The notes below the pieces were generated by a model. It had not been told where the DNA came from. It saw nothing but the letters and a program-made list of their open reading frames with translations, and did no database searches. Below, piece after piece: positions 3,292 to 49,000 of a stretch of 50,969 bases of DNA (its first letter is position 1; every line of letters starts with the position of its first letter). Source of the DNA: Girardia tigrina (taxonomy: Eukaryota); the NCBI GenBank assembly GCA_001938485.1, contig MQRK01220052.1, positions 1-50,969 of the forward strand. The letters run 5' to 3'. The translations under genes were made by a program, and so were the position numbers.

Positions 3292-3524
3292 ATGGTAACC
3301 AAAGTCGACTTGAAAGTTGTTGTTTTGGGCAAAGAATGCATCGAAAAAACTACATTAGTCGATCGATTTTTGAACGGGAATGTCCAGGCGAATAATGCCT
3401 ATCAACCAACGATCGGGCGGCCTATCGCGCGCGCCAATTAAAGAACATCGATAATATTCCGATTATAATGGGCGTTTGGCACTCGGCAGGGAGCGAGCGA
3501 TATCAGTCAATGATACGAATTTTC
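3292..3524 (+). pseudogene. RAB24: Rab24 N-terminal fragment (frameshifted, G1 and G3 motifs mutated)
   Basis: MVTKVDLKVVVLGKECIEKTTLVDRFLNG..YQPTIG/AAY..IMGVWHSAGSERYQSMIRIF versus Rab24 [50 protein letters not shown]; frameshift near 3417; absent from the ORF track. Confidence 0.85.
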
Positions 3525-3542
3525 AAAAAAATCAATTATTGA

Positions 3543-3996
3543 TATCGTGAGCTGAGAGACGCTGAGCCGCGAATTCTCCACGACAAAGAAATCAAAAGGT
3601 CTCACAACTCTGAACTAAAGAAATGTTACGACAACGTATTGGTGCAATTGAAAGAGAAAATTACCAACACAAACGGCCAATCAGTCATCGTCTTACCGTC
3701 GATCAAATCCGATGTCGACACTCTCATGAACGCGCTTCTTTCGGTCATTCGAAATGGCGTTCTCGTGCAAGTCTCAGAGCATTATTGTGATCGCACTCGA
3801 CTGTCTCCAGAAACTGAATGCGTACGGTTACATCTCGAACTCGGCGCTCTATCGCGACTCCTCCAATGAAAGACTCATCGATAAGATCATCGTGTTCATC
3901 TGTGACGCCTTTCAGGACGGCCATTCCGGGGACGCCGTGCGGCTGCAGATCATCAAGGCCATTCTCACGATCGTCATCAACCCGAGTCTCGAGGTG
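3543..3996 (+). pseudogene. Sec7-family Arf-GEF BIG1/BIG2 (ARFGEF1/2) N-terminal DCB-region fragment, frameshifted
   Basis: RILHDKEIKRSHNSELKKC../FFRSFEMAFSCKSQSIIVIALDCLQKLNAYGYI..LIDKIIVFICDAF..VRLQIIKAILTIV matches the BIG1/2 N-terminus; frameshift at about 3727-3732; similarity stops at 3996. Confidence 0.9.
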
Positions 3997-5949
3997 CAAA
4001 TTTTAAATGTGACCCCCCGACCGGATGCTCGCTTCCCGTCGCCGGCGTGCCGCAGCCACAAAATCGCTGTGCCCGCTCTTGCACCATCACCCGTGATGGT
4101 TTGTCTTGATAACGCTCTTACAACTAGTGAACTTTATTCGTGAACATTTATTGAAGGCAGTAATTTTTTAAATAAGACTCAAAAAGAAAACATTTAATTT
4201 ATTGAGAAATTATCAAATTTAATTTATTTGATTAACATTCGGTATTTTTTATTAAGCGGTTCGATTGATTGATTGGAAATATTCTCCGATTTTGATTGAC
4301 AAAAACAACCTACTGATTCTCCAAGAAGGTTTCATCCACAATTATAATATTTCTGAAGAATTGGAAAACGATCTCATCATAAATTGAAATTTTCATAAGT
4401 TCAGCAATGATAGATATCATTGATAGTTATTCTAGTTCTACATTTACAATTGGCAAAAATTCCTCTATTTTGTATTCTAAAAATATCTAGAATGACTAAC
4501 GTTTTTAGTCATAAGATTCTGGATGGCGGATTCAAATGGATATTGCAGAAGTTCTAAGTCGCAGCAAGTATGCTATCTCAAAAGAATTCAGTTTTAATCG
4601 CAACTGCATTGGAGTAGGATTTGTTGGCAGAGTGTCCAAGATTGTTATTCATTCAAATCAACACTAACAACCCGAAAGATTAAAAAAAATAATTAAAAGA
4701 TTTTTTGTCAGATAATTTTGACAGTTTAAAAATGTAAATAACTACTTTTAAATTAAATTAATACATCTTCATCATAAATAGTATATTAAAATATTTTTGA
4801 AAAATAATTGGAATTGTAAATTGACAATGTAATTGAAATTTTTTTGAATAATTAGAGGTTTAAAAACAGAATTAAAATTTATCAATCAAAAACGATATCC
4901 AGTTACAAAAGTTTGTGGAGGACAATTGTCCCGGTGGCAATTCGAGTTGTGATATCAATAAATGTATTGAAAATCATATTAGAATTCTTAATACTATAAC
5001 CAAAATAAAACAATAAAATATTTCTTTTTTTCTTTGAAATTTTTTTTAGTATTTTAATATTTAATAAATGAACACTAAAATAAAAAATTATCAATATAGA
5101 TATTTACAAAATTTAAAATTTATCACAGTTTTTTTTAAAAAAAAATATTTATTTGTAATGTAATGTAATTTATTTTATAAATCTTTTTTTATAAACTTTT
5201 TAATAATATTTTTAATAACTATTTATTAAAGATTTTTTAATAAAATTGATTATCTAATTTGATTTTTGACAGAACTTTAAAATTGATACAATTATTTGAG
5301 AACTAGGACTCCTCAAACAAAATCGAAACATGTCCATCTCCTCTGAAAGATGTTTACAAATATCTTTATTTAAAATTTTTTAAAATAAATTTATGAATTA
5401 TTGGTCAATGTAGAGAAAATTATTTCTTTAAAATATCGTTTTCCTTTAAACAAATCCGAATAAAAAGCAAGTCATTCTTTGAAGGAAGAAAGAAAAATCT
5501 ATAAACCAAATTTTAAAAATTAAATTTGAAATGTCTTTTTAATATCTTGTTTCTGAAATAAAATTTTCTATTGTTTTTCCCTCAACATTAAAATGTATTC
5601 ATTCTGATACCTTTACACAGGAAGCTTTTCCCTTCAGCGCTGTAATTTCCCCGTCAACCATTATTTAGATTATGGTTCACGGATTTAGAATATAATTTTA
5701 ATTTTTAGAATATAATAATCTTTTGACTATTTTCGTCGGTTAAAAGCAAAACAACGTGAGAAGAAATAATAACAACACAACATACTCGATAAATATGCAC
5801 AAAAATATAGCAAAATATTCTTATAATTATTAGAAACATTAATATTTTTTCTGTCATTTTTATTAATATATTTATTATTAAGGATTTTTCGATCTGTTTC
5901 AGAATTTTTACAAACATTATTAAAAAAACAAAAATTAAAAATTTCGACT

Positions 5950-6185
5950 ATACCCTCAAAAAAATTACCCTAGTCCCCGAGAGAATAAATTATCCCAAAA
6001 CAATTGAGCTTAGAAGATCTTATGCTTCAACATTTAGAATGTTGGAAGTTGAAAATTATGATAAAACATTATTTTCTTGGAAAAAGTTGATATTTGGGTG
6101 GTCTGAAGACCCAGTAGAGGTAGAAGTAGATGCGAAGAATCTGCTTCTCAGTCGGTTCCAGCAGCTTGAAGCAAGAACATTTTCA
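5950..6185 (+). mobile_element. Tc1/IS630-like transposase fragment
   Basis: TLKKITLVPERINYPKTIELRRSYASTF resembles the region before the first catalytic Asp of IS630/Tc1 (DDE_3) transposases. Confidence 0.55.
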
Positions 6186-6188
6186 TAA

Positions 6189-6192
<4 letters not shown>

Positions 6193-6237
<45 letters not shown>

Positions 6238-6287
6238 NNNNNNNNNNNNNNNNNNNNNNNNNNNNNNNNNNNNNNNNNNNNNNNNNN

Positions 6288-6331
<44 letters not shown>
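6193..6331. repeat. (TA)n microsatellite spanning an N gap (6238-6287)
   Basis: direct reading. Confidence 0.95.
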
Positions 6332-6333
<2 letters not shown>

Positions 6334-7047
6334 CGGTAAAAGTTTACAATTGGTAAAATTTATTTAATCAAATAGCATAATTAAAAATATTTCAAAATTT
6401 AATTTTATTTAAATATTAATTATAATAATTTTTAATTAAATATTTTCCAATTTTCTTGTTAAATCACAGAGAGAGAGTTTTAATATGTTTTATTGAAATA
6501 ATTTACGTTTTTTTTAAGTTGATAACTTTGATATCGTGGAAATGTTTTTAAAAATTATTCTTCTATGAATGCATTATTTAATCAAACCTTTAATAAACAA
6601 ATTTGAAAGATCACCAATTATAAACCTTTAAAGAATGTAATTTGGGATTTTCTATTTTCAATGTTTTGCTTTATAAAATTATTCATTTTATTTTAAAGCG
6701 AATTAATATTACTTTAAAAATAATATTTTAAATTTTAATAAAATCCTTTTTGTAAAGGAATATTGGTAAGGTCTAAAATTAAAATTGTTATTAAAGATTA
6801 TCAATTTTCTTTTTTATAATCGATTTCTGACTCGATGCATTTAAAATTCTGATTTGATATACAACGGTCGCTGCCAAGATTGAACACTTCCTAAATTAAA
6901 CAGCACCAAAGTGCATGATAAGAATATACATTAGTGTCCAATTTCGAGAGTGATTACTGTATATACTTAATCCTTTTATTCTCTAAGGGAAATATTAACC
7001 TTAGTTTAAAATATTAAGAATACCATTAAAATCAAATTTTATTGCAA

Positions 7048-7082
7048 TATATTTCGGTGGATTTTCCACCATCTTCAGACTG
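7048..7082 (-). ncRNA. minimal hammerhead-ribozyme-like motif in Penelope pseudo-LTR
   Basis: CTGAAGA-T-GGTGG-AAAAT-CCACC-GAAA-TATA on minus strand. Confidence 0.55.
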
Positions 7083-7669
7083 AATTAACAACAATTTCGC
7101 TGTCTTATATATAGCAAATTGATGATTATGCAAACATCTTGCGTAATAACTACTTAAATATTTTCAACTTGAAGAGAGAGATGACAAGACGCCTCTCCAA
7201 TGTATGTAGCGTTGAACCCATTACACGAAAATTCATAAACCGGATTGGAACATAAACTCAAAGGAGAACGAGATTTATTGCTGAATATACTTTGAATTTT
7301 GTAAGATTTAGAAATGATTTTTAAATTCAAATTTTTACTATCGATTGATTTTAAAATAGACGTCTCGTCATCTCTGTAAACGGATTCAGGAGCATGGACG
7401 ATTGGGTAATGGGAGTAATATTGCTGGACACATGAAGGGTTGTAAGTCGGAGGTGAAAACAACTAATTTTAAAATATTGTGCAGTAATTTTAAAAATTAT
7501 TGGGAAAGAGTTACTTGTGAGGCATTATTGATTAAATCACTTAATCCGTCCATTAATGTCCAAACAAGTCTCTCTTCCAATTTGTTGAAAATATTTAATT
7601 AGTTATTATGCAAGATGTTTGCATAATCATCAATGTGCTATTTATAAGATAGCGAAATTGTTGTTAATT

Positions 7670-7710
7670 CAGCCTGAAGATGGTGGAAAATCCACCGAAA
7701 TATATTGCAA
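7670..7710 (+). ncRNA. minimal hammerhead-ribozyme-like motif in Penelope pseudo-LTR
   Basis: CTGAAGA (7674-7680), stem II GGTGG/CCACC, GAAA (7697-7700), palindromic TATA; stem I weak. Confidence 0.55.
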
Positions 7711-8989
7711 TAAAATTTGATTTTAATGGCGTTCTTAATTATAAAATTTTGCCATTATTTTTAAAATTTAAAATATTAGGTCATCCCAAAGTCCTTTTAC
7801 ACTTGAGAAAAATTCCACTTATTTTGATCATAAAAAAAATGCAAAAATAGAGATAATGCTAGCTATAAAACTGGATTTTTAGTTTTGAAGAAAATTTTCG
7901 ACATATCATTAATATATGTTACTGGGGTATTTTAACAAGGCATTTACAGCCATGCTTAAATGTTCGAAGTGAGTTTCATAATAGTCAATTTACTGTACTT
8001 TCAATCTAAAGTTTGGACATAAATGACGATACCATAATGAAAAAAAATGTTTTGTTTTTTAATGAACGATTTTTTAAATAACATTTTTTTTTGAAAAATT
8101 AATAAAATATATTTTAAAGGGTTTATATCAACCTTTTGCGGCACTTATAGCCTCTATTTTCCGAGATATTGATTGATACAAATTGTTAATTGTTTCCTAA
8201 GGAATTTATGCCTATTTTACATTTAAAACAACATCCAGTTACTTAAGAAACAATGGTGGAGGATATCAATCTTATACTCGAATCTCTAAAATTGCTCAAA
8301 AATCATAATGCTCAATAATGTTGAAGCTGGAAATTGTTGTAGCCAGATCAGATTCTCAACTTCATAATAATATTCCTCATTCAATTTTTTACCAATTCTA
8401 GCTGTATAGATTAGTTCTTTATTATCTTTAATAATGGTGTTTCTCTCCAGAAATAATTCATAAACCATATGACGACCTTGGTCAACCTAAAATCCCTATA
8501 TAATCTCTTCAGTTAGTTCTTCTATGAAAATAAATCATTGGTTCGACAGATTTTTGAAATATACCACCCCAAATCCTGACAAAATCCTAGCCTCATTTAA
8601 CGATTTGAAGAAGACAGTCTAGATGAAAAGTTTCTATTAGCTATCTCCAAACGTTAACTCGGATGGAGGTCGGAAATAGGTTAAACAATGATTCGTCAGA
8701 GAAAATAAATTTTTTTCAAAGCTCAATGGAAAAATTTTGGAAGTTTCTACACCACTTTAAACACTTTAAAATTTGTCTTTGAGAGCAGAGGTTTTTTAAT
8801 TGTAGTTTTTTTGAGGATTCCAGATTTTTGTGGTAGTGATTCTTGAATCCGCGGTTTTGTGATCCTCTCTAATAATCCGATTTTGAGTCATTTGTTGAGG
8901 ACTTTTTTCTTCTCTTTCAAAAGCAATCATTATTTTTCAAACTGTACTCCTTGAAATGCCTTCAGATAGTTTATATTACACTAACGCTA

Positions 8990-10360
8990 GGTCAAAAATT
9001 CCCCCCACGAATATTCCACCATCGAAAATTCCACCAATGAAAATCCTACCCACAAAGATTCCACAAAAAAATTAAAATTCCTACAACAAATGAATTTAGT
9101 TTTTTAATTATTAAAAATATTTGTTAGTTTAAAAGATTTTTAAAAATTGAATTTGTTTATGAATTAAATAAATTAATTTTAAAAATCAAAATGGGGTTTA
9201 AAATATCTATTAAGTAAAAAGAATAAGAAGAAAATTTGTGATGCAGAAAACTGTGTAAGAAAAGCTTAGAGGTAACCCTAAACAAACTAACATACTGGGG
9301 ATGCGAGAAATTTCATAAGGGATCTAAAGCTTGCATTCATACTGATTTTAATAGCGATGAACCTTATCCTTTTTCTACTTCTGACGTTCATAATCATGGT
9401 GCATCAAAAGCAAAAACAGATGTCCAACTTGCAGTAAGTTCAATAAAAAAATGCTATTTTTATCGGAAATGGAGCTTCACCGAGGAGGCTACAATCATCA
9501 ATATTTTCGCAGATGAATGAAGAAGACAAATCTAAAGTGCAGAGTTTATTAATATTCAAAATGGATGCGAGTGTCTTTGGTATTCCGGTTATTCCAATAT
9601 CTTGAAGAGGATATGAAATTCCAGATTCTTTTAAATATCTAATCGATGACTCACTTCTTTTGGTATATGAGTCTGTGTATAATGTATTCAAAGACGTTTT
9701 TAATGATGCTACAATTTCTGGTTGTTTATTTCACTTAAGTCAGTCGTTTTGCCGTAAAGTTTGTGATTTAGGAAATAGAATTTTGTACTATACTTTATCT
9801 TCATTTGCACTAAAAATAAAATGCTTCAGTGCATTAGCATTCCTAGCATTACAGTATGTCATTAAAGGATTTGAATTTCTCTCAAATGTTGAAGATCTTC
9901 CAGCTGAACAAACCTATATCGTCATTCAAAGAGGATTAGGTCAACGACGAAGAAGAAATTTGGAATGTCAGATGTCGTTCTATTAATAATATTTCAAGAA
10001 CAAACAATCCAATTGAATGATTTAACAGTTCGTTAAGAGCATCACTCCCAAGTTTGTACCCCAACATATGGTCTTTGTGTCTGCATTACAAAAAGAATTA
10101 TTAACACAAACAAAATTAATTCCTGTCAAAAGAGGAGATTCTTGACTTGAAAGTAAAAATTAAAAAATGTTAATAAAAATTTAAAGAATCTTGCAGAAAA
10201 ATATCTAGCAAACTAAATTATTGAGTTTTTGAAAGATGCTGCAATAAATTTGCATTAGTTTAAATAAATTGTTTCCTTTCATTTGTTCGACTTTTATTAT
10301 CATGTTTATTAATATAATTGTCATATTTATAATTGTCGTGGGTGGAATTTACATGGCACC
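8990..10360 (+). mobile_element. Mutator/MULE element, decayed and internally deleted
   Basis: YWGCEK..HNH zinc-finger-like region, ATISGCLFHLSQSF (CxFH), RTNNPIE; AATTCCACC subterminal repeats on the left and GGTGGAATT on the right. Confidence 0.85.
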
Positions 10361-12797: not shown

Positions 12798-14057
12798 GGG
12801 GTTATCCATAAATAACGTCATGCAAGAAAGGGAGGCGGAGCAGAATTTCGTGATTTGTGAAAGGTGACTTCACATCAAAGTGATGCACGAGCTTCATCCC
12901 CAAATTATTAGTATGCTTATTAGTTTTTATCATTAAGTTTACTGATGAAACAAACTAAACATCTTAAAAAACGAAGGATATACATGTATGTGTAATGGTT
13001 TACATTTTAGTGAAAAGTTTTATAAAAAATTAATTATTTTAGTACTTTACGAAATAATTAACATTTCTTTAAAAGACAAAGCCAAAATATATACCTGTTA
13101 GGGCTTAAATATGTCTAGTGATCAAAAGTGGTACGATATTCACGCGCGGACAAGCCAATAATTTGCACAGATAGTAAAATGCAGTGACAGTATGTGCTGT
13201 TCAAAACCAAGAAGCTCTTATTTAAGTGTGATAACAGAGAGATTTCTTCCTGTTCCTTTACCAGTTATTCAAACTAGCAAAGGTCTACGTATTCTAGAAA
13301 GGACAACAAACTGATAGTCTCATAAATTCCTTTCACTGTTTGTAGCACGAAGCTTGAAAGTGGACAAAATCCTTCCTCGCTCTTCAAATACTTATCGGTC
13401 GATTCCATATGACTTATACTGTCCGTCAATACAGTCCATACGTAGTGATAGGATTTGCAAGACATGTCATACATAATTTGTGTCATAAGTTTTTCTCCGT
13501 AATCATTCTGTTGCCCACAAGCCGGAATCAATTATTGTTTTACTCAAATGCGTCAGGCCACAGAGAGTCGCTGCACATTGTCAACGTGAACTAGTGGTTT
13601 TAATCGTGAACGAAAACAATGTAGAGAATATAGATTGGATAGATGAAGAAGGCCTTGATCTGAATGGTATCTCCACTCCACTGAATGAAGAGATTCGTGC
13701 TCTCCCTATTTATTCCGTGAAAGAGCATTTTGATTCGCCAAGGGAGAATTGAGAGGCATAAAATTTTGTGAATTAATTGTGGAATTATCTATGGAAAAAT
13801 AATGTATATTGTATTCCCAATTTTTCTTATTTTTATTTTTCTAATCGCTATAATCTTTTGATTTGATAATGAGACAGAATTTTCATATTAGTTTTGTGAC
13901 AAAAACGATACAAATACAAAAGGGAAATCTAAGGCGGGGGTTAGAGCTTTGTGACATCATATTTAATGCGGGGTCAGGTATTTTGTGACAAAATACGTTG
14001 AAGGGGAGGAAGATGGAAATCTGCTAAAATAGCGTGGCGTCATTTATGGACAGCTCT
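12798..14057 (+). mobile_element. Zator DNA transposon, internally deleted
   Basis: TIRs GGGGTTATCCATAAATAACGTCATGC / GCGTGGCGTCATTTATGGACAGCTCT, ATT on both flanks; HARTSQ*FAQIVKC..CC..RFLPVP and PYDLYCPSI..RICKTC relic at about 13120-13520. Confidence 0.7.
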
Positions 14058-15249: not shown

Positions 15250-15490
15250 ATCAGGAAGATGAGTTTCCCTAGCCTCAAACACCCTCCTTATAGATTGATT
15301 TTATTTGTTCCTCCATCTCAAGAAACTCATACGAGGTAGATATTTCCTCTCAAAAACAGAATTAAAAGATGTTGTGTAAGAATTTTTTAAGAATCAACCC
15401 GCCAATTTCTATGAAAATGTCTTCTTGGAGCTGGTAAGACGCTTGGAAACATTTCTACAGCATTTAGGTCCTATATTGAAAATAAATACC
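15250..15490 (+). mobile_element. mariner transposase C-terminal relic
   Basis: LFLHLKKLIRGRYF..EFFKNQPANFYENVFLELVRR. Confidence 0.7.
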
Positions 15491-17306: not shown

Positions 17307-17790
17307 TGTGAGGAATATTTTGGATGTTCGATGTTTTGCGTTCGAATGTTGAATGTTGATTTATAATTGTGTCTCTCCTACCCAGATGGATGATTGGTAT
17401 TTTAATTCTTATTATCTGAAAATATGTTAAGTTTAAATTTATTTCTAATTTAAAATAATTGTAAAATTTAAAATAAGTTAATTAATTTTATTTACAATTT
17501 TTAATAAATAAATCGAATTAATATTTTTTAAATAATTAATAATTATTTTAATTTTAATCCGATAAATTTTGTGTAAATATTTTAACAAATTATTTATATC
17601 ACAATTGGCTAAAAATAATAAGATTAAAGTCATTAATCAATTAGTTAGAATGCAATTGTACGAAAGCTTTGACAAAGATTGTCTTAAGGACATTCAAAAT
17701 TGTTGTGTTAATAAAAATATAAAAAGTCAAATTGGTGTTCTTAATAGTTATGATGTATTCCCAAGAATTAATATTTCGTGCAAGAACTCA
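17307..17790 (+). mobile_element. Gypsy LTR (TG...CA) followed by a degenerate tRNA-iMet PBS
   Basis: starts TGTGAGGAATATTTT like the PPT-adjacent LTR at 50901; ends CTCA followed by TGGTAGCA (17792-17799). Confidence 0.8.
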
Positions 17791-18519: not shown

Positions 18520-18959
18520 GTTATTAAGAACACCGATTTGACTTTTCGTATTTTTATTAACACAACAATTTTGATTGTCCTTAAGACAATCTTTGTCAAA
18601 GCTTCCGTACGAGTGTATTCTAAACTAAATTGATGAATAAATTAATTCGTATTTTTTTAGCAAATAAAGAAATAAATAATTTATTTAAATATTTACTCAA
18701 AACTTATTGGATAGAAATTAAAATGATTATTAATTATTTAAAAAATATTAATTTGATTTATTTATTAAAAATTGTAAAAATTAATTAACTTTTTTAAAAT
18801 TTTAAAATTATTTTAAATTAAAAATAAATTTAAACATAACATATTTTTAGATAATAAGAATTAAAATATTAATGATCCATCTTGGTAGGAGAGACACAAT
18901 TCCAAATCAACATACACATTCAAACACAAAAACATCAAACATTTAAAATATTCCTCACA
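18520..18959 (-). mobile_element. Gypsy LTR, inverted copy
   Basis: colinear reverse complement of about 17307-17745. Confidence 0.85.
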
Positions 18960-31006: not shown

Positions 31007-31070
31007 NNNNNNNNNNNNNNNNNNNNNNNNNNNNNNNNNNNNNNNNNNNNNNNNNNTGTGTGTGTGTGTA
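30976..31070. repeat. (TA)n/(TG)n microsatellite around an N gap (31007-31056)
   Basis: direct reading. Confidence 0.9.
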
Positions 31071-31373: not shown

Positions 31374-31478
31374 ATGGAGGAAATCGAGTCGCCTTATTTT
31401 TTATTAAACTGGCTTCGAGGTGGTGCTGAAGAAATGCAATTGTCGGCCCTCGAACAACTGTATCTGGTACTCTTGCAA
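31374..31478 (+). pseudogene. HECTD1: HECTD1 E3 ligase extreme N-terminal fragment
   Basis: MEEIESPYFLLNWLRGGAEEMQLSALEQLYLVLL versus HECTD1 [36 protein letters not shown]; no continuation recognised. Confidence 0.72.
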
Positions 31479-34332
31479 TACGAGACATGTTTGTGTCAAG
31501 ATTTCGATATTTCATTTGTGCTTCCTCACGTAATGATCAATCGATTGGTCAATACCAAAGGATCATTAATTACCATTTGTATGAGATTGTAGAATCCCAA
31601 TATGAAAAATCCCATTAGTCGGATCAAATTAAAACGGGCCCAGCACATCGAGAAAGCTTCCCTGCGTAACCCTGTTACCTCGAGGCAACCTGAGTGTCGG
31701 GCGGAACAGGGTCTATTCTAGAAATCTAAAATCAAATAATATGAAAATTTATATTTACTATATTTTATGAAATAAAATTATCAAAAATGAAAAATTCCAA
31801 ATAATCAAGAGGATGAAGTAACGTGATAGATTATATCTCTGTTGTGAAAGATTCGCTTTTTAGGATCAAGATTATCATCATTCCACTTCATCTGGCTAAC
31901 ACCTCTGACATTCTACCTTGTCTGTGCCTACCCTACCAGTCATCCCTTTTATGGAAAATTCATGTTTTAAAGTGACATATACTACTTTTGATAACACCTT
32001 ATGATAACGTTAATTGTTAACCTAAAATAGCAAAAATTTATTGTTATATGTTTCTTAAACTTTTAAATTAATGGAAAATTTTTTAATGATAGAAAACTAG
32101 TTAATAATAATTATTATTATAATAGTAATAATTTTAAAAATAATAATAATAATAATCTCTTTTTAAAATCTTATAGGTGGAAGTCATTATTTATAACATA
32201 AATTAATTAATATAATATGATAATACTCCAATATTAAAACATATAACTTTAGATTATGAGTTTGATTAAATATATTATTTTAATTATATTTGAAATAGTT
32301 TACACCAAAATGTATTTATTTCTGCTGTTGATTATTTGTACATAATATTATTTTCATGTAATTTTGTATTCTTTGAAAATTAATTTTGTTTTAATTGAAG
32401 AATAATAAATAATCAACAGTTTATTTTATTAAAGTCAATTTGCTATTTAAAAAATGTTAAAATTTTATATTTATTTTCAAGTGGCATTTGGAAAATAAGA
32501 AATGATGGCTTATGGCACTCGAAGCGCTAATGGAAATGAGCAATGTACTGCATGAGAACGTATTGAAACACTCGAAGAGCTCTAACGGATACGAATGAAA
32601 TGCTCGTTTTATTTTTATAAAATAATTTTACATAAATTAAAAAATATATATTTTAATGTTTTTTATTTTATTTATATTAACTAAAAGTTATATTTAATGT
32701 CATTTAGTATTCTATGTTCATCTGAAAGTGAATTAAATGGAGAATTATTTAATTTGGAAGTAAAAAAAGATGGTAAAATTTACACTAATATTTATCATTG
32801 AAAGTTTAACAATCTTCTGCAATAGGAGAATTAGTGTACAGCTGCCATATCTGGGGTAACTGGTACATTGAGATAAAATCCTGTAAAATTACATTAAAAT
32901 TATAAAAATTATTTAGCACTGTGGTGCTCAAAAAATAATGAGCAAAAAGAAAAATTCCAAGAAAACGATAATTGTTTAAATAAATTAAATGGAATGCGAA
33001 CAATTTTTAAAAAAACAATTTAAATGAAAAATAAATGTTTTTGTTGATTTGATTGCATGTCAATTCATAAATTTCGTGGTAATCTCGACTGATTTCTTAT
33101 CAACAATCCGATGGGAATATGGATTGGTTGAAATTGATCGATTTCCTCGGGCCGAACCCCGTACCATCACTCCAGATCCGACGTGTTTAACAGATCGACA
33201 TGACCAATCGGATCGACAGAAACCGGACGGACGTGACGATCACGCTGTTTGTTACTCGGTGACATAACGAACCGGTCGAACCGAGTCTAGTGTTATTACG
33301 TGCAGCTCGGCGGCGAACAACCACGAGTTACCGCGGTTGAATCTGGTTGTGCCCATCGCTCTCGTAACAGCTTGCAGGAATTCCCGTTCCTCGCAGTTAT
33401 ATTAATGAAGTTTTATGAAAAAATATGGTTTTTTAATAATTTATTACTTATAGAAATAAATATGTGTAATAAGAAATGAATATCGTGGAAAAAAACTGAT
33501 ATTTCAGGTTCCTTTTAAAAAAGTTCGACAAAACTCTTACACAGACATATAATTGTTGATAAACGAATCGCTAAAACTATTACTGACTCTACTCATGAGT
33601 TTTGATCAACCCCATAAAGCCTTTGTTTTTTCTTTAATTTGGCTCAACACATATTTAAGATATTTCGTGCATGAAGAAAGTTTAATAGAATAAGTCATTA
33701 ATTTGAATGTTTTAAAAAAATTTACAGAATTAAATCATAAATTAATTGTAATTATATAAAATTTCTTTTATTCTAATTCCAAGAAAACGATAATTGTTTA
33801 AATAAACTAAAAATGGAATGCGAACAATTTTTAAATGTACACTATGTACACTATGTACTTCATTGACTTGCTGGGGTGGTGCATGTCAATCTCCAGAAGA
33901 ATTGATATTCGGTGCTTGATATCTTCTCGTAACCATTTAGAAAAATAAGAATTATCTGAAGAATAATTGATTAGCGTAGTAAAACAACATTAAAAAATTA
34001 GATATCTTATATTATATTTTATATTATATTGTGTTTGTTAGGGTTCCGAAATATACATGTGAACACTTTTGATAAAATTTTATAAAGTCTTTATAAAATC
34101 TTTTATTCTTCTATTATTTGGGAATTTTTAAAAGATAAACTATATAAATGTAACCTTTTATAATAGTGTGATCAATTTAGATTGGTAATGCAGGGTTTTT
34201 CATTTTTTATTATTGTTAAGAATTAAAAATGTTAGGAAAATTTTTGAAAGAAAGTTATATTAAATATGTACAAATTAAAATTTTTATATAATTAAATATG
34301 TAACATTCGAAAAAATAAAATTACTAAAATTA

Positions 34333-34450
34333 NNNNNNNNNNNNNNNNNNNNNNNNNNNNNNNNNNNNNNNNNNNNNNNNNNNNNNNNNNNNNNNNNNNN
34401 NNNNNNNNNNNNNNNNNNNNNNNNNNNNNNNNNNNNNNNNNNNNNNNNNN
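34333..34450. other. assembly gap
   Basis: run of N. Confidence 0.99.
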
Positions 34451-38929: not shown

Positions 38930-41402
38930 CAGTTAACTCTATCTATTTTCACGAATTTGGAACCGAAAAAATTGAAAAAAAAGTGAAATTATAAAAATGG
39001 CTATGTAATTTCACATATATAATTTAATAAAAAAACAACACGAGTAAATATCATATTATATTATTAATCCACCAAATATCAAAAATTTACTTTAAAAATC
39101 CAATATAATCATAACAAGAAAATTCTCAAATCATACAGTCATAAAAATCCATAAATCAGAATAATCGAAGAGTGTCTTTTGCTTTGAATTTTTGCTTCTA
39201 ATTTGATTAACATCAATTTTTAATCTTTTTAATATTCTAATTTCATTATTGCTATTTTGTTCTTGTTCCTCTAAAAGTTTTATCGATGTGTTACATGTAT
39301 TTGTTGCTTTTTGATAAGTTGTGGGAATTATATGGCTCTGTGAAGATGACGATGCATTTGTTTCCAAAAATTCATCATCTAAATTGTTTGTTAATTCATC
39401 ATTATTTAACTCAACATTTAGTTTATACTCTTCTTTATCTATAACCTCTTCAATAGAAGTAAATTCTTCAACTGTCATTGGATTTTTAACATTAATCTTC
39501 TTAATAAAGTCTTCCGATTCTTTTTTGTCTTTTCGAGCAATGCTTGTCTTGTCCAATGAACTCAATTCAGACTTGATAAGTTTCGTATGCTTCCAACAAT
39601 TTTGAATCGTTTCAGTGGATACATCCTCTCACGCACCAATAATATATTTAATTGCGTGTCATAAATTAAGTTTATTATTAATAAAAACATTATTATCTGC
39701 CAAAGAATCAAGTAGATAATTTAAAAATCTTTTTCGATATTTTCTTTTGAATGATGCAATGATTCCCGGCATCGAGTGGTTTTAACCTTGCGGTTGTATT
39801 GGGTGGCAAAAAATGAACATTTATAGATTTTAAGTTTATATCATTAACATTATGTGGTAAGGTGTAGAAATAATAGAATCTTCATATTTTTATCTTTCTT
39901 GTAAATTTCATTATCAAATTTTGTAATCCATTCTCTAAATATTAATGTTGTCATCCACGCGTTTGTATTTGACTTGTAAATGAAAAAAAAGTTTTTCAAA
40001 TTAATATTCTTAAAATATCCTGTGTTTTGAGACTTACCTATGATGAGTGGCTCATATTTTAGTTTTCCCGTTACATTTGTCCATAAAGCTATAGTTATGT
40101 GCTATTTATCTTTTTTCTTACTAGCTATTCTCTTGGATACTAATTTGTTGTCAGACTCTTATCGGTAGTAAACTGCTGTTTCATCAAAATTATAAATATC
40201 ATTAGGATCGTATTGGTTTATTAAATTTAGGAAAATAGGTAAGGATTAGTCAACAAGATCTCCATCAACATTTCCTACCTCTCCGTGAATGTGTCATTTT
40301 TTAATCCCAAGTCTTTGTTTGAAACCTGAGAGGCATCCATCTGAAAAATTAATTCTTTCCTTTTCCGGAATGCGTAATTTATCACAAATTCTTTTTCCTT
40401 GATTAGAAAAAGAATCATCAATTATTATCAATCTCATTTCGTTTGTATAAAACTATTCAATCAAACTTTTTCTAATTGTGGATACCTGACATTACCAGTT
40501 CTAAATGAATTTGGATTCACTATCTGGCATATTTCGATATCAAATTGAGGAGAATTAATGATTTTAATCCAGGAAGCCAATTGTTCATGTTTTAGTTTCT
40601 TGTTCGCTTTGGAGTGTTTGTAGAGTTTTGTTTTTCCGCTTTGGTGAGTGAAACATTGGACTTTTAATATGGACCATGTTTTGATGGGTTTGGATTTGTT
40701 AAATTTATTTAAAAATTTTGAAATATTACAATATTAAAAATTTTAATATTACAAGCGCACTCACTATTTGACATCTCTCTTGATCAATATATTTCTGATT
40801 TCATACTAATTATTTTCAAAAAATGAAAATCTGTTAATAAAAATTATTAATTATAAAGAATCTAATTGGTTGAAATTAAATCTAAACATTTTTTTAAAAA
40901 AAGAACATATTATATTAATATATTAAAATTTTAAATTACATTAAAAACATAAATAATACATTCAAAAATTATTTTAAATCTTTTTTACTTTACAATTAAA
41001 TTAAATTATTTTTAATTAGTAAGAATCAAAGAAAACATCAATCATCCATTCGTGCAGGAGAGGCACAATCCGAATCAACATTTTACATGCACAAATATCA
41101 ACACACAATTCAAAACATTCCTCACAATATTAAATTGATTGAAATATTTAAACAATGATGACAAATTATTTTTCAAAAGTCAAATATACGTAATTTATCA
41201 CAGATTCTTTTTCCTTTATTAGAAAACATTTCATCAATTATTATCAATTTCATCAAATTTTATTAGGTTAGTGTGAAATTATCAAATTTTGAAATTAAAA
41301 AATTTTTAAGCCTAAAAACATAAAGACATGATTTTTTTCGAAAAAAGTGTGTAATTGTCTAATTGTAAAATTATCGAGTGTGAAAATAGATAGAGTTGAC
41401 TG
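38930..41402 (-). mobile_element. pogo/Tigger (CENP-B-like DDE_1) transposon, decayed
   Basis: TIR CAGTTAACTCTATCTATTTTCAC / GTGAAAATAGATAGAGTTGACTG, TA TSD; FSDGCL..FKQR, HGEVG, IYNFDETA, HFLPPNTTARLKPLD at about 39131-40680. Confidence 0.93.
40760..41126 (-). repeat. Gypsy LTR copy inserted in the pogo element
   Basis: TGTGAGGAATGTTTT start and TTGTGCCTCTCCTGCACGAATGGATG motif; left boundary approximate. Confidence 0.65.
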
Positions 41403-41869
41403 TATCACTTTCATTGTCTCCACAGTCATGTCCTTCAATATCATCAGTAATGAAATCGTATTCTTCAACTTTCTCTTTCTTGCCCAGACTCTCTTCATAA
41501 TCATTGATACCGAAGATGTTGTCTATGGCTACTGACATCGTAACTCGTCTCGGCATAGTGTGTTGTTCAACTAAAAAGATATAGATTTTAGGAAATCATC
41601 TATTTCATTTTTGGACGTAATTACACCCTCTTATTTCAACGGGCCCATCACCGGAACGACGAGCATTACCAATAACAGGGTTTGCGATTCCTGTAATACC
41701 TCTTCCTAATCCAAGGCCTCCTTCATTATTCTTTTGTTCAATCAAAAATATAAAATATGTGATCATTTACAAAATCAGATCTTAGAAAATAACTTACGGT
41801 CGGTGAAACAACTCACTGAGACTGCTTCAAACCTCTACCATAACCATAAATATTTATTATTTTGCAAGA

Positions 41870-42445
41870 CGCAAAGATGCTCGACTTTTATAGCTGATAT
41901 ATCAATGTGAAATAACGGTTCTGGCACTTAAGATATGAAGTTCTCGATGAAGCCATAGGTGAACGGTTCACAATCATAATTCTTGTCCTACTGTTGACAA
42001 GTATTGAAATGCAAAAGAAGTGCGACCATAAAGAAGTTACCTCGAGTTTTCGTGATAACTTTGTTTATACTTTCAATGAAGGGGATTACTGTAACATTTA
42101 TAGTTTTTTTATGGGCATCCCGGTAAAGAATTAAAGATGTAAGCATTCTTCTGAGTACAACAAAGGGTAAACCAATAAAAATTTTCATGGTTTATCAGAA
42201 CAATGCAACAGCATTTCGGAGAAGTCATTCTCTCCATGAAAGGTGCAAGAGATGAACCAATTCGAAAAAGTTAAGACATTGCCAGGTTTCACAATACTAT
42301 CAACGAAATTGTTGATATCAGTATCATCGAACCAGTACCGCGAATCTTGTGGTCTTTCTACAATTTCACCGGTATCAGAAAGGGTAGTGCCACCCTGTCA
42401 ATTTTGTGTTCTCCTTTGACCTCTTTTTCTAGAGGTAGTAGGCAT
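41870..42445 (-). pseudogene. Ulp1/C48 SUMO-protease-like domain, degenerate
   Basis: YWFDDTDINNF (cf. WLNDEVINFY) and CQQ*DKNYDCEPFTYGF (cf. PQQxNxxDCGVF); catalytic His region not legible. Confidence 0.6.
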
Positions 42446-43521
42446 TTTTGTTTAGGATAATATGGATGTGAAGGAATTATCAGAAAATTCTCCCTCCTCA
42501 GAAATTAGCTCATTACTTGCTGTGCATTTTTGGGAAAAAAACATACGGTTCTTGAGACTTATCCATGTCAACGTCTTCAAATTTACTGAATAATTTATCT
42601 TCCATTTGAGTGAAAGTTATAACTGGAGGGGCATGGCAGAAGGAATAATATTATTAATTTTAAGATTTTACTTTCCCAAATGTGTATCGACGATAGACAC
42701 ATTGTTAGCATAAAGATTTTGACTATACCATTATTGTCAAGTTTTATCTTATGTGTCATTATAATATTTTTTAGTTTTTTGATTTTTACATAATATCAGC
42801 TGTGAGGAGTTTACATGGGTTTTCAAGCAGTTTTTGACGCAGCTTTTTAGTAATAATATCCATGGCAACCGCCGAAGTTTGTTTAGACTTGATTTCCTTG
42901 AAATCCGAAAAAAACTTCATCACTTAACATGCGGACAGCAATAGCAAAACCGTTGCAGTTTTTGTGACATCTATCACAAATAGTTTCTATGATATTAGTT
43001 AATCTTTCAATCGTAAATGTATGGGAGATGTAAATAACTACAGCCGCCTTCCAGGACGGCGGGCATGGAATACCGATATCAAACGCTATAAGGAGTAATC
43101 TATCCAACTATCGTGGCTCGATAGGTTCGGTAGTATGAATATCCGTCGCAAGAAAATACAAGTTTCTGACGAAGTTTCTGCTTAACTTAACTCTTCTTTG
43201 AGAATGATTACTTTCCTTGCTAGATAGAAAACTCACAAAATTAATCTTTTCTATGTGAACAATTGTCCATGCTACATGCAATTTTTTCCTAATCAAATCA
43301 AGAGAAAAATGAAAAACGGTCTGGTTACAGTCTCATCAAAAGTTGCTGGTGTAAAATGAACCTCTTTATCAGAACAACTGGGATGATCCTCTTTTTTATC
43401 AACTTCATATCTAACATCATTAGGTGGATTATTTGAAATATCATCAACAATATCTTTATAATCATGGCATTCGGAACATCCCGAGTAATCCGTTAAAATT
43501 TAAATAAGTTATTTTCCGCGT

Positions 43522-43640
43522 GTTTTTATCACGTTTTACTTAGTTTCGTTTCTTGTCTGTCTGTCTGTTTGTCTTTCTGTCTGTCTGGAACAAATCTTGC
43601 GATTGATTTTTCGACCACTTTCAGTCATCCAATTAAGCTG
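43522..43640 (+). mobile_element. Helentron/DINE-like end with GTCT microsatellite
   Basis: TTTTTATCACGTTTT followed by (GTCT)n. Confidence 0.4.
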
Positions 43641-43754
43641 AATTTTTTTATACAGGCTTGCTTCCGATGACAATACAATATTTTAAAACATTTACGGCTC
43701 TACATAAACTGCATATGCTATAATTTAACTTTATGAAAATTTTAATTTTATGAA

Positions 43755-44430
43755 AAAATTTAAAAAATAATGGCAAAATTTTATAATTAAGAACGCCATT
43801 AAAATCAAATTTTATTGCAATATATTTCGGTGGATTTTCCACCATCTTCAGGCTGAATTAACAATAATTTCGCTGTCTTATATATAGCAAATTGATGATT
43901 ATGCAAACATNNNNNNNNATAACTAATTAAATATTTTCAACAAATTGGAAGAGAGACTTGTTTGGACATTAATGGACGGATTAAGTGATTTAATCAATAA
44001 TGCCTCACAAGTAACTCTTTCCCAATAATTTTTAAAATTTCTGCACAATATTTTAAAATTAGTTGTTTTCACCTCCGACTTACAACCCTTCATATGTCCA
44101 GCAATATTACTCCCACTACCCAATCGTCCATGCTCCTGAATCCGTTTACAGAGATGACGAGACGTCTCTCCAATGTATGTAGCGTTGCACCCATTACACG
44201 AAAATTCATAAACCAGATTGGAACATAAACTCAAAGGAGTACGAGATTTATTGCTGAACATACTTTGAATTTTATAAGATTTAGAAATTATTTTTAAATT
44301 CAAATTTTTATTATCGATTGATTTTAAAATAGATGATTTCAATTTTTTGTAACCTTCTGAATAAGGAACGATTAGCGAATATCCAATTGCCCCACGTTTT
44401 TGGTTAGGTATAAAATTTTTCACATGTCTA
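43755..44430 (-). mobile_element. Penelope-like element 3' part: GIY-YIG endonuclease and pseudo-LTR
   Basis: ORF 43923-44423 NLVYEFSCNGCNATYIGETSRHLCKRIQEH..EALLIKSLNPSINVQ. Confidence 0.93.
43818..43855 (-). ncRNA. minimal hammerhead-ribozyme-like motif
   Basis: CTGAAGATGGTGGAAAATCCACCGAAATATA on minus strand. Confidence 0.55.
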
Positions 44431-45899
44431 GAAAAAAATTATTTTCCTCTTTTAGTGCATTGGTAATGCTTGAAAAACGTGGTTGTTTTTATAAAAAATT
44501 TTTTTATTAATAATATTATTTATTATTTTTTTAATTTTAAAATTAATCCAATTTTATTTTAAAAATTTTCAATATAAATTTAAAAAATTTTAATTATATA
44601 TATCTTACAATTTATCTCGAGTTTGCTTGTCGAGCGCGATATCAATATTTTCGGTAATATTAAAACTTCTAAAAAATAGTTGGTTGTTAAAAAAAATTTC
44701 AATTGTGTCATTAAAAGAAAACTGAAAATTTTTTTTAAAAAAAGCTTCTGAGGATTTATTCTTTAAAAATAAATCTAAAAGTCCCTGCGTTTTTTTAAAA
44801 TTCTTAGTTTTAATTTCTTTGTTGAAAAAAATATTAATATCATTTTCAATATCGTACGATTTAATATGCTTATCAAAATTAAAATTAAATGGCTTTTTTC
44901 TCAATAAAAATATTAAAAGTATTCAATAATAAACTAATATCCTTTAAATGAAATAAATTATTTACGATGTATCCTTGTTGATTCAATCGGGACTTGTGAA
45001 CATTTTTATCCGTTGGTTGGGACCAGTTACTGGTTTGATCGCTTTGATTATCAATTAAATTGTGTTGATAGATTTGGTTCCCAGTTTTATTATCGGTTTG
45101 TCCAGTTGTGAGGTCAATTTGAAGAGACCGGGATTTATCATTATCAGTTATTTTCTTTTTGAATTGCAATCGGTCCGCTTTCATCGTTATACAAGCATTC
45201 ATCAAGCTAATAAAGGCTGGTCCAATGGGTATGCATGCGCTAATTTTTATATATTCAGAATCTACTCATTAAGACGAACCTTTTGATATATAAAATGTCG
45301 GATCTAAAAGTCTCGCATCATAACGTAATTATGTATTAAAGGTCAAATTAAATACCTTCGGAATTCTTAATGAAATTGGACTCATTTTGTGGACATTTTT
45401 TATGCTGATTACGAATATGCGATTTATTTTGCAATATATTTTATTATTATCAAGTTATTAAAAAATAATTTTTTAAATTCAAAATTTTTATTGAATAAAT
45501 ATTATTAAATAATTGAAGATTATTAAAAAGATAAAATCAATTCATTTTCAATAAATGAGGTTTTTAAAATATTCTTCACCTGCTGTTACAACGTGTTGAA
45601 GACGGTATTTAAAATTTCCAATAGTTTTCGCAATTATTTCTTGATCAATGTAATGATATAATTTCATTTCATAAAATTAAATTATACACTTCAAAAAAGA
45701 AAGAAATTAAAATAAAGTAATTATTTCTTGTTTAAATAAACCGATTTTAATAAAATGAAATTAACAAAAGAAGTTTTCTGTGACCGACAACATGTATCTG
45801 AAAATTTATCTCGTCACGAAAAAATCTCGATGCATATAGAAAATTGTACTGCATGTTAAAATTTAGAAATAAATTTAAAAAAAAATTAACCATTGATAA

Positions 45900-46620
45900 A
45901 AAGTTGGAATGATATTATGATTCTGAAAAAAACTTGTCACCTGTAGTACAATTTCTTGCGGAACAAGGATTGGCTTTTAGAGGACATTCTAACACTTTGT
46001 ATAACAAAAATAACGGAAATTTTCTTAATTGTATCGAAATGATTGCGAAAATTGATGACATAATGACATATCATATTAAAATAATTAACAAATCAATCAC
46101 TTAAAAAAAACAAATGCCACATTACTTAGGACAGTGGTTTCCAACATTTTTGTACTGGCACCTTCCTTTAAAAAACAAATTGTTGATTCATTTTTTGTGA
46201 CACCAATTCGATTTTTTTGGTTTATATTCGAAAATAATATTTTGGAAACAGCTGCATACCCCCACTTGCAACGGTCTCCCGCCCCCCTGAGGGGTGCCCC
46301 CACAGGTTGGAAAGTTTTTTAATGGAAACCACTGACTTAGGAAACACTTTCAGAATGAAATAATTACTATCCTTAGTGATCAAAAAAGAAAACATATTTT
46401 AATGTCGATAAAAGATGCAAAATATTTTTCAGTTATTTTAGATTCCACACCAGATACTGAGCATTGTGAACAAATGTCAATGGTATTTAGATATATACAT
46501 TTTCTAAATGATGAGATTGTATTAGAGAAAATTTTCTAGGATTTTTCAACGATGAAAGTATGACTGGTGAGGCTTTTTATGACTTCTTATTACAAAAACT
46601 AAACGATTTCGACTTAAGTA
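45900..46620 (+). pseudogene. hAT transposase relic (ZMYM1/DUF4371-like), split by a MITE
   Basis: QFLAEQGLAFRGH..NNGNFL, FQNEII, KYFSVILDSTPD..HCEQMSMVFRY. Confidence 0.9.
46132..46334. mobile_element. hAT (Charlie-like) MITE
   Basis: TIR CAGTGGTTTCCA / TGGAAACCACTG, perfect 8-bp TSD ACTTAGGA. Confidence 0.93.
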
Positions 46621-46639
46621 GAACGAGGGGTAGAGTCTG

Positions 46640-49000
46640 TATCCGTTCTTTGTCTGCATTTGTTGAGCCGGATCGAAGAGCTTATTTGTGTGCCTGGTGT
46701 AGTCGTTCTAGTTTGCCGTTACTTTGTGGGTGATATGGAGTGGTGTGTTTGTTCAATGTCGTATCGGTAGCACAGATTTCGGAAATCTGTTGATATGAAC
46801 TGTCTCCAATTGTCACTGATAATTTGCTCTGGTGTACCGAAACGCGATATCCATTCTTTTTCTATGATATCAGTAACTTCTTTAGCCCCGATATCCCGCA
46901 TGGGAAGACTTCCACCAACATGTGTCGCGGTCGATCATGGTCAAGAGGAACTTCTTTCCTCTGATTTCTTTGAGAGGTCCAACTAGGTAGATGAGAATCA
47001 CTCAGAGTTTTCCTCTGTTCGTGATAAGGTCATGTTGGTGCGTCTTGTGACTTTATTGACCTGGCAATTTTGACAATTTCTGATCCATTTTCAAATTTCA
47101 CTCTTCTTGTAAGGCGACACATAACGTTTAGTCAAGAGTTTAATTGTAGCCTTTGCTCTTCTATGATATCAACAAATTTCCTCTGATTTTCTTTCGATTC
47201 ATCACGATCGTTTCGTCGATTTTTGAACCGGTCGCGGCTGTCGTCATCGGAATCGTCTCGTTAATTGTGGCGGGAATTTCCGGATCGAATGTATCATCGA
47301 CAAATCAAATCAACAGACTCAATTTGCCGACATTTCTTTCACCGATAATCAGAATATTCAATATCGTAATAAAAGCCTCTATAATTTTTCTGAATTGGAT
47401 CCGAGAAATTTGATTGAACTCAAAAACTGAGAATCGAATCCGATGAGTTGCTGAATTTCCACTTCCATCATTCAATTTCAAACCATCGCAAACTTTATGA
47501 GAGACAAACATGGCGACTCAAAATTCAATTTTATTTAAATTTCCAGTCAAAAACTCGCGCCAAACAAAAATTTATTATTTCATTTAAACAAATCTAATAA
47601 TTTTTTCATATAATTTACAAACAAAAACAGTATTTTTTCAAATAATACAATTAATTTTTTTCAGCAATAATTGTGATCAAAATAACTTAAATTTAATTTT
47701 TTTTCACTTTCAAAATTCCTCAAACAAGGAGTCTGTAATCACCGCACCATAACGAGAGGAGGGGACCAGTCACTGTTGCTCTCTCGTATAATGCCGCCTT
47801 TAAGTAGCAAATCCAACTGTATTCAAACAATTCATAAGCTGCTTTCGAGAAAATGGTGGACCTGATGTTTGAATGGAAAGTGGTGGTAGGCTGATCAGGT
47901 TTTGTATTTCCATCGGCTTCCGGAGCAGTTTTTAATTTTTGCAGTCTATCAGAAGCTTGAATTTGGCTAAATAATCGGAGCTCAAGATTGGTCGGCGAAC
48001 GTCTGCGACTGTGAATCTCCATGGGAAGTCTTCATTTAATACTGGAATATGGAACTTAAGAAGTTTCTCACCGAATGTTTTGATTTTGGCATTGTTGGTG
48101 GATATTAATGCGCGACTAGTTGCTGTTGAGTCTGGCAGAAAAGTAGCTTGAGGTAAAACGCTAATATCTGCTCCTGAATCGTTAAAAAATGAACATACTA
48201 ATTTTTGGACGTGGCAGGGATGATGGAAATAACGTTGATCTTCATCTTGTATCGAAAGAGATTTTTAGGGTACTTAGTGTTCGAATTCAATGGGTCCCTA
48301 GCTCTTTTCCTGGAAAGTTTTCTGCTCTGTAGGAGCACGGTGTTTAACATTTACCCGTTAATTTACCAAATCTTTGATGATAGAAACACAGTCATGATTC
48401 ATCGGTGTGAGATTTGCTGAGTCGATTCTTTATACAATTGATTATCGATTTAATCTCTTCTATTGCCATGTTAGAAGACTGATTTTTGGGCACGATTGTT
48501 ATCAATTGCGTATCATTTAAGGAGAAATGATCATCGGCTTTGACACTGAGTGCCTCCAGACTGAGCGATTGGAAAATTATCAGGTGGTGTCTAATTAAAG
48601 TTGGGAGAGCAGCTAAGAATTGCTGCTTGATTAATTAACACTTGTTTAGATCTGCATTGGGTTGGATTATTCGGTGGAATTTCTTTAATTCGTCTAGCAA
48701 TTTGATGGGTTTCAATTGATGTTCGGTTCCGAGTTCGGTCAAGAGGCGTAAAGCTTGGGCTGCAGTCATCGTATTTTCCTTTGGAGAGCCTGTTTCAGTT
48801 TTCCATATGAATAATTGCAGGAAGGATCCATGGCTGATGTATGTGTATCCAGAATTTCAGGAGGTAGGCTGGTGAGAACATGGAAATATTTTGTCTTCTG
48901 GCTGGAAATGTTTTCCAGTTCGAATGCGGCTTTGACTTGAATGAACCAGTTAGCAATATTTTTGCGAATCTGACTTGAATGTGACTGGACTCAGTCACTT
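46640..49000 (-). mobile_element. decayed Gypsy element (gag, protease, integrase; RT/RNase H missing)
   Basis: gag-like LKPIKLLDELK..QQFLAALP..LEALSVKAD, DSGADISVLP at about 48150-48185, KATIKLLTKRY..CQNCQ, WISRFGTPEQIISD. Confidence 0.85.
47263..47385 (-). pseudogene. RAB18: Rab18 N-terminal fragment
   Basis: ITILNILIIGERNVGKLSLLI*FVDDTFDPEIPATI versus Rab18 [36 protein letters not shown]. Confidence 0.85.

Follow-up and report, generated by a model that had tools for sequence, protein, structure and literature searches.

Why does a locus crowded with transposon remains also hold the front ends of conserved host genes, and what could have assembled them there? The question is raised by a 50,969-bp stretch of Girardia tigrina DNA (NCBI GenBank assembly GCA_001938485.1, contig MQRK01220052.1, positions 1 to 50,969; hereafter the window), which has 28% GC overall and is a mosaic of transposon remains. 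The original prediction, made from the letters alone, recognised four host fragments in it (RAB24, ARFGEF/BIG, HECTD1 and RAB18) and proposed one window-wide system that samples the 5' ends of host genes. The pattern is real, and a retroelement family with gene front ends as its cargo accounts for part of it: capture by mobile DNA holds for the RAB24-like and BIG fragments, whereas a single system spanning the window is no more than a possibility. We give a probability of about 0.45 to the reading that the block formed by these two fragments and a short 3' module, here called R (3292-4089 in all), is a decayed member of a repeat family that is non-autonomous, spreads through RNA and is defined by a fixed 3' tail, with front ends acquired through 5' transduction or exon trapping.

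The BIG/ARFGEF N-terminal fragment lies at 3544-3998 on the plus strand, and its identity, judged by PDB and Pfam matches and by orthologue alignment, is solid. Interrupted genes were searched piece by piece; for the piece 3730-4140 the match is human BIG1, at its DCB domain (PDB 5ee5, E=2.6e-16; Pfam DCB, 1.6e-8), and this piece, together with 3543-3729, aligns with residues ~12-165 of full-length BIG orthologues. The fragment starts near, not at, the start codon, and a frameshift lies near 3725-3735. First exons were mapped in three BIG orthologues, from one insect (Diaphorina citri) and two nematodes (Heligmosomoides polygyrus and Steinernema carpocapsae), all of which are interrupted by introns at three shared places, after ..AL(E/G), DC(L/I)Q and QI(I/L)K. 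In window coordinates these conserved positions correspond to about 3642, 3810/3811 and 3957/3958, and the window fragment is uninterrupted across every one of them. Because of this continuity, the BIG fragment most likely derives from spliced RNA.

Upstream of BIG, head to tail on the same strand, lies a small-GTPase 5' fragment with RAB24-like motifs (3292-3524), which extends for ~78 codons from an ATG at 3292. This ATG aligns with position 1 of the Ras profile (Pfam Ras/Roc), and the PDB matches of the piece 3292-3524 are the N-termini of Rab7, Rab6 and Rheb, with no RAB24 among them. One base is missing at ~3415-3418, which shifts the frame, and the fragment contains no intron. Its switch II holds AGSERY, which we take to be a fit to Rab24. 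The altered P-loop reads GKE, which fits Rab24 (Y17: PMC7756361). By motif, then, the paralogue would be RAB24. Only a junction stretch (3525-3543, plus strand, delimited by alignment), made of a run of seven A and then about a dozen AT-rich bases, separates the end of the RAB24-like fragment at 3524 from the BIG start at 3544. RAB24 and BIG are one composite element, not two independent samples.

Module R occupies 3957-4089 on the plus strand. Its 133 bp comprise the last 14 BIG codons and a GC-rich tail of 91 bp (3999-4089), which breaks off sharply at its 3' end, position 4089 (...GCACCATCA). The idea that R is a complete BIG exon was considered and set aside, only the first 14 codons aligning to BIG. 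An exhaustive protein search with the BIG piece recovered ordinary BIG proteins and two short proteins, P0024 and P0025, whose match, at 71-80% identity, is confined to the final 60 residues of the query; a word-index protein search with the same piece gave no short relatives. A region-restricted search added P0167 and P0168, and the P0167 cluster holds three further full-length members. The related contigs (L001, L002, which is equal to L003, L004, L005 and L009-L011) come from NCBI assembly GCA_013558295.1, four ENA metagenome assemblies and two JGI metagenomes. All seven share a stretch of 77-133 bp with window 3957-4089, at 91-96% DNA identity, and all eight R copies end at the same base, with different downstream DNA in each. 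R is absent elsewhere in the window, also as an inverted copy of its end, and scans of metagenome, viral and prokaryote collections for further R copies returned only a contig already known. The tRNA and Rfam scans of the window gave no match, nor did R at a relaxed threshold; the predicted fold of R is unremarkable (z=-1.05).

Upstream of this tail the partners change from copy to copy. They are a sideroflexin, a MAP65/PRC1 homologue and a protein-coding piece here called gene X, all in R's orientation and each running from its ATG for 140-330 codons. Partner starts fall at profile positions 1-2: the sideroflexin matches Pfam SFXNs (E=2e-77) over profile positions 2-225 of 319, and the MAP65/PRC1 homologue over 2-134 of 477; gene X extends 241-330 codons from its ATG. 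The claim that membrane-trafficking genes are enriched among the fragments falls with these partners, since the related copies carry sideroflexin, MAP65/PRC1 and gene X. The constant part begins at 3544, 3957 or 4013, depending on the copy. In L001 the sideroflexin-R junction coincides with the third BIG intron position, 3957/3958, directly after AG, which fits an old exon junction re-used as a cryptic acceptor; short homology there is the alternative. Two side observations concern the same contigs. A palindrome-like motif, ACCGAAAA(T)ATTCGGT, stands at L001 1-60 and L005 ~790-850, 130-240 nt 5' of the sideroflexin and PRC1 start codons, and may be a promoter element. At L001 992-1088, 11 nt after R, the window's Penelope-like element (PLE) recurs with the final ~95 nt of its 3' tail, in the same orientation.

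The gene X-BIG-R arrangement forms a 1.76-kb unit present in at least five copies (contigs) that are 99% identical. It opens with a 67-codon open frame that ends TGATGA; after ~390 bp of AT-rich DNA come codons 1-330 of gene X, then the BIG start and, last, R. In three of the five copies the first base is the same (CTGTTTCGCG...) and the 5' flanks are unrelated; the 3' flanks are unrelated in all five; and L011 is without the first ~360 bp of the unit. Because ends are shared, flanks differ and one copy has lost its 5' part in this way, the copies are the product of transposition with 5' truncation. L002 differs from L004 by an internal deletion between short similar sequences. The frame running from gene X through the BIG start into R is open for 393-421 residues in four copies (L004, L009, L010 and L011; P0167, P0169, P0170 and P0171). 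Gene X itself has no Pfam or PDB relatives, and its single-sequence AlphaFold model is uninformative (pLDDT, a per-residue confidence score, 31).

The unit also bears on the order in which such blocks are built. L004 has the BIG start as it stands in the window (3544-3585, 93%) but carries gene X in RAB24's place, and the junction stretch 3525-3543 is partly common to its gene X-BIG junction. L004 and the window thus share a BIG start with different partners, and therefore front ends have been added repeatedly to a pre-existing BIG-R unit. The captured pieces hold promoter-like upstream DNA, and the gene X unit also holds the tail of an upstream open frame; read-through transcripts therefore fit better than mature mRNAs as the source. 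As a separate observation, L002 9-143 (minus strand), just beyond the 5' end of the gene X unit, contains an open frame with GLPKVHK...PMRPVIS, typical of Penelope-like reverse transcriptases.

The ends of the unit do not resemble those of a Pack-MULE, Pack-TIR or Helitron. The two termini, CTGTTTCGCG... and ...GCACCATCA, are not inverted and form no terminal inverted repeat (TIR); there are likewise no TIRs around 3292-4089 or 31374 in the window. Helitron ends are absent from the unit, which has no 5' TC, no 3' CTRR with hairpin and no A/T insertion site, and no long terminal repeats (LTRs) were found at R-family copies.

From the observed common tail with its sharp 3' end, the variable 5' partners, the multiple copies with different flanks and the intron-free BIG fragment, a cycle of the following kind may be drawn. 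A copy, usually 5'-truncated, would insert in the sense direction in a host gene. Transcription from the host promoter, or read-through from upstream, would cross the first part of the gene and stop at the 3' tail of the element, and the introns between would be spliced out of the chimeric RNA. An autonomous partner recognising the tail would then reverse-transcribe this RNA and insert the product elsewhere. The route would amount to 5' transduction, or to exon trapping when splicing uses a cryptic acceptor within the element. Copies bringing a promoter with them could be transcribed at their new sites and so amplify further, and repeated rounds would stack front ends head to tail with the newest 5', as the window order of RAB24, BIG and tail suggests; L001 and L005 are possible first-stage insertions. 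Gene fronts would always be captured because transcription begins at the host promoter. The model would account for the sampling of front ends, their stacking in one orientation, the 5' truncation of inner pieces and the amplification of promoter carriers.

Several points weigh against this reading. A poly(A) or simple-repeat tail after R is absent in every copy. There is no clear target-site duplication (TSD) and no exact duplication of at least 8 nt; a check at three full-length copies gave weak 6-nt similarities only. No autonomous element sharing the R tail was found in the window or in the collection scans. The loss of the BIG introns is inferred from orthologues in other phyla and not from the host's own parent genes. 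The PRC1-R junction has no preceding AG. L001 and L005 are single short contigs and may represent primary insertions into real genes, not mobilised chimeras. The related metagenome contigs are short-read assemblies, in which paths through a 1.8-kb repeat can be chimeric, and the related contigs, coming from other assemblies, may not belong to the same species. Finally, no carrier ties the remaining two fragments of the window, RAB18 and HECTD1, to R.

The RAB18 5' fragment (47263-47382, minus strand, ~40 codons) was recognised in two adjacent pieces. Each matches only the RAB18 entry 1x3s among 177,635 PDB sequences, and the two fall at consecutive chain residues (10-33 and 35-48); with E values of 0.48 and 0.1 each is weak alone, and the identity is convincing from the joint result. 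The fragment reads ATA where the start codon would stand, is interrupted by an in-frame TGA (47307-47305) and has an altered P-loop. It ends ...ATI, presumably an ancient Ras-family intron position, with no GT donor or intron after it. On the minus strand, the surrounding order is the gag (DUF7041), protease-like region and first reverse transcriptase (RT) residues of an LTR retroelement (47723-49058; Pfam DUF7041 7e-11, with the protease and RT start read by eye), an AT-rich promoter-like stretch of ~340 bp 5' of RAB18 (47383-47722), the RAB18 piece, ~70 bp, and an integrase comprising zinc-finger region and rve core (46685-47190; Pfam rve 3.4e-7). RAB18 occupies the expected place of RT and RNase H, which are missing there. 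Its position on the same strand between the gag-protease-RT start and the integrase is what retroviral or LTR transduction would give; unlike that process, the region has no LTRs that could be seen and includes promoter-like DNA, and tblastx between the window's two LTR elements found no similarity, so that the gag-protease and integrase halves need not come from one element. Like the gene fronts of the R family, the RAB18 fragment was probably acquired at the RNA level; what it is joined to is the 3' half of the pol of an LTR retroelement.

Two further features mark this region. A 29-nt motif, identical at 26 of 29 positions and in the same orientation, occurs at 3100-3128 and at 47602-47574 (minus strand, within the promoter-like stretch), that is, 163-192 nt 5' of the RAB24 ATG and 191-220 nt 5' of the RAB18 start. 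The upstream sequence common to the fragments amounts to short AT-rich motifs only, whose significance against simple shuffles is probably overstated. A second short motif, GTCGCCAT, follows the 29-nt motif upstream of both RAB24 and RAB18. The region as a whole (45211-49483) is bounded by inverted arms of 255 bp at 45211-45464 and 49231-49483, 80% identical, each preceded by TA and starting (C/A)AGG(G/C)TGG. Between them lie hAT-like pieces, the integrase, the RAB18 fragment and gag/protease, a cargo that consists mostly of transposon fragments and is present in single copy. The arms could be Tc1/mariner-like long TIRs with nested insertions, or a Pack-TIR-like carrier.

The HECTD1-like N-terminal piece (31374-31485, plus strand) extends ~37 codons from an ATG and was assigned by reading. 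It has no Pfam match, its sole PDB match is a designed armadillo-repeat protein, and it has no recognisable carrier; the name follows what we take to be the HECTD1 N-terminus, which no tool confirmed.

What, then, becomes of the pattern as first described? Of the four host fragments, BIG, RAB18 and a small-GTPase N-terminus with RAB24-like motifs stand, and HECTD1 is unconfirmed. The claim that they begin at or near the start codon is borne out in that tested starts all lie within the first ~15 parent residues, although BIG begins near the start rather than at it; the 5' bias of the position-tested fragments is far beyond chance. The inactivating changes are there: frameshifts in BIG and the RAB24-like fragment, and the ATA start and TGA in RAB18. 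So are the GC-richer islands, which hold all fragments, with 48% GC at 3351-4150 against 28% overall and smaller islands at the other two places. A common carrier, module R, exists for RAB24 and BIG; none was found that links RAB18 or HECTD1 to R. None of these statements depends on the gaps in the contig. The four runs of N (6238-6287, 31007-31056, 34333-34450 and 43911-43918) all lie within or adjoining (TA)n/(TG)n simple repeats and none lies inside a host fragment, the nearest (31007-31056) being 318 bp 5' of the HECTD1-like ATG; the argument on the host fragments is independent of continuity across them.

The chief rival to transduction of gene fronts is template switching, in which a reverse transcriptase begins on element RNA (the R tail or a Penelope-like 3' tail), transfers to a host RNA and copies that RNA up to its 5' end. 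An excess of front ends would follow because synthesis runs off the RNA 5' end, and several details have this look: the Penelope-like tail 11 nt after R in L001 resembles a jump from PLE RNA to R RNA, A-rich runs stand at both the RAB24-BIG and gene X-BIG junctions, the junction points in the constant part vary (3544, 3957 and 4013), short homology occurs at the L004 internal deletion and at the sideroflexin-R junction, and the window holds Penelope-like copies that are young (99% identical). Mature mRNAs, however, would bring neither promoter or intergenic DNA nor the upstream frame end that the gene X unit contains; splicing is favoured by the sideroflexin junction, which follows an AG and coincides exactly with an old exon boundary; and jumps normally land on RNA 3' ends, so that truncated host RNAs would be needed. 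We regard template switching as unlikely, if less so than the readings that follow.

Capture at the DNA level, by a cut-and-paste or rolling-circle transposon (Pack-TIR/Pack-MULE-like or Helitron-like) or by gap-filling repair, would explain promoter-like upstream DNA in the captured segments. A MULE-like transposase remnant (by eye) is present at 9242-9983, the RAB18 region lies between the 255-bp inverted arms, each after TA, and Pack-TIRs are documented in animals (PMC8277862). Yet the three conserved introns are missing from the BIG fragment, the gene X-BIG-R unit shows no TIR, no clear TSD, no TC...CTRR ends and no A/T target, no TIRs surround RAB24-BIG-R or HECTD1, and the other transposon fragments in the cargo between the arms fit nested insertions. 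The Pack-MULE-like mechanism of the original prediction is thus not upheld for this family, and DNA-level capture seems to us distinctly improbable. Slightly more improbable still is that there is no system at all, the fragments being unrelated decayed pseudogene scraps or the first exons of degenerate duplicates whose other exons were lost among transposons. RAB18 and HECTD1 do share no carrier with R, P-loop N-termini are the parts of GTPases easiest to recognise by eye, and Pfam gave no other host family on 229 open stretches, in a fragment census that is very incomplete. Set against this, neither an intron nor an intergenic spacer parts RAB24 from BIG, other assemblies show R behind different front ends, the tested starts cluster at the parent N-termini, and no fragment is followed by a recognisable donor and intron. 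Decayed duplication with introns, which had been named among the observations that would refute the prediction, finds little support in the locus: there are no introns inside the fragments, BIG follows RAB24 directly, and no further exons were recognised in a limited search.

Transduction of front ends onto a fixed tail has precedents, and to call the mechanism undescribed, as the original prediction did, was too strong. The closest are found among SVA and L1 elements, which transduce 5' sequence and trap exons (the MAST2 first exon in SVA_F1 is one case), and among L1-mRNA first-exon chimeras (bioRxiv 10.1101/2025.02.02.635956; PMC6139936; PMC10681720). As in the R family, spliced host first exons stand in sense orientation before the 3' part of a retroelement, the 3' end is common and the 5' side variable, and the captured sequence can drive new copies. 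Unlike SVA/L1, the R family has no poly(A), no clear TSD and no LINE/SINE body, only a 91-bp tail; it occurs in an AT-rich invertebrate; its front ends are stacked serially; and it has captured long coding stretches (80-330 codons) with upstream non-coding DNA. Classical processed pseudogenes are likewise intron-free, but it is their 5' end that is lost and their 3' end and poly(A) that are retained, the reverse of the R family. Pack-MULEs of plants and Pack-TIRs of animals are also non-autonomous, with several host gene fragments, often GC-rich 5' parts, and chimeric open reading frames (ORFs) (PMC8277862); the R family differs in having no TIRs, no clear TSDs and an intron-free BIG, candidate long TIRs occurring at the RAB18 region only. 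Helitron capture joins gene fragments into chimeric arrays whose 3' terminus is conserved, whereas here the 5' TC, the 3' CTRR with hairpin and the A/T site are missing and introns have been removed.

Penelope-like machinery is a further candidate. In Adineta vaga it can move host sequences in trans (PMC3846280), and GIY-YIG Penelope-like elements are young and abundant here, with one R copy followed by a PLE 3' tail. The genes moved in A. vaga, by contrast, contain introns and are framed by Penelope terminal repeats, whereas here there are no framing repeats and BIG is spliced; the PLE tail follows R only in L001 and in no other copy. Penelope-mediated mobilisation as the engine of the R family is possible.

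The rest of the window is transposon sequence of many kinds. Pfam scans, run in four batches on the 229 open stretches with the 20-30 kb block left out, found transposon families, DCB and Ras only. The recognised domains are a hAT dimerisation domain (350-751), a pogo CENP-B-type helix-turn-helix (16.7-17.0 kb), the GIY-YIG domain of a Penelope-like copy (43.6-44.4 kb, matched by an inverted copy, 99% identical, at 7.4-7.8 kb), and the integrase (46.7-47.2 kb) and gag (DUF7041, 48.8-49.0 kb) that flank RAB18. Read by eye were a FLYWCH/MULE-like transposase remnant (9242-9983), mariner and Tc1-like transposases (22.4-26.5 kb), an LTR-element pol (26.6-29.1 kb), a pogo DDE domain (39.1-40.1 kb) and hAT-like pieces (45.9-46.7 kb). 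Ten GC-rich pieces of no assigned identity gave no match in a relaxed family scan, and a 129-residue ORF gave none in an exact look-up. The list of host fragments in the window is therefore very incomplete, including for fragments from other than 5' parts of host genes.

Some repeats in the window deserve mention in their own right. The 3' part of the Penelope-like element (GIY-YIG and tail) is present in two copies, 97-99% identical, at 7013-7847 and 43651-44438, inverted and 36 kb apart; the former contains a local inverted duplication (7013-7168 versus 7584-7739) and the latter an 8-N gap. A word-index protein search with the Penelope-like ORF found relatives at 64-70% identity only, all unnamed. 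A pair of inverted repeats of ~400 bp (17350-17746 and 18522-18916, 81-92% complementary) is foldback-like or resembles a miniature inverted-repeat transposable element, and a relative of this pair lies at L001 1184-1276. At the left edge, 51-132 holds a GC-rich 21-bp tandem repeat in at least three copies, adjoining a hAT C-terminal remnant. A 2.2-kb run of open stretches on one strand (41298-43499, minus) has no Pfam match and is probably an unclassified transposon protein.

The young repeat family defined by R suggests a more general claim, which we hold more doubtfully than the reading of the block itself: that an invertebrate retroelement family with hardly any body beyond its 91-bp 3' tail keeps itself going by taking up, one after another, the promoters and first coding parts of host genes, and in doing so builds stacked chimeric frames, such as the gene X-BIG-R frame that is intact in four copies. 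If this is true, the family would be an RNA-based animal counterpart of the Pack-MULEs, and the 5' bias of captured sequence would have a simple mechanical reason in the start of transcription at the host promoter. Promoter capture, known from a few primate SVA/L1 cases, could then be the main way of life of a minimal invertebrate retroelement. N-terminal coding parts and promoters would be shuffled genome-wide, giving chimeric ORFs, sustained exon shuffling and perhaps antisense or small RNAs directed at the parent genes, and gene annotation would be confused by N-terminal pseudo-paralogues. The 91-bp tail would also offer a tractable system for the minimal cis-signal of retromobilisation.

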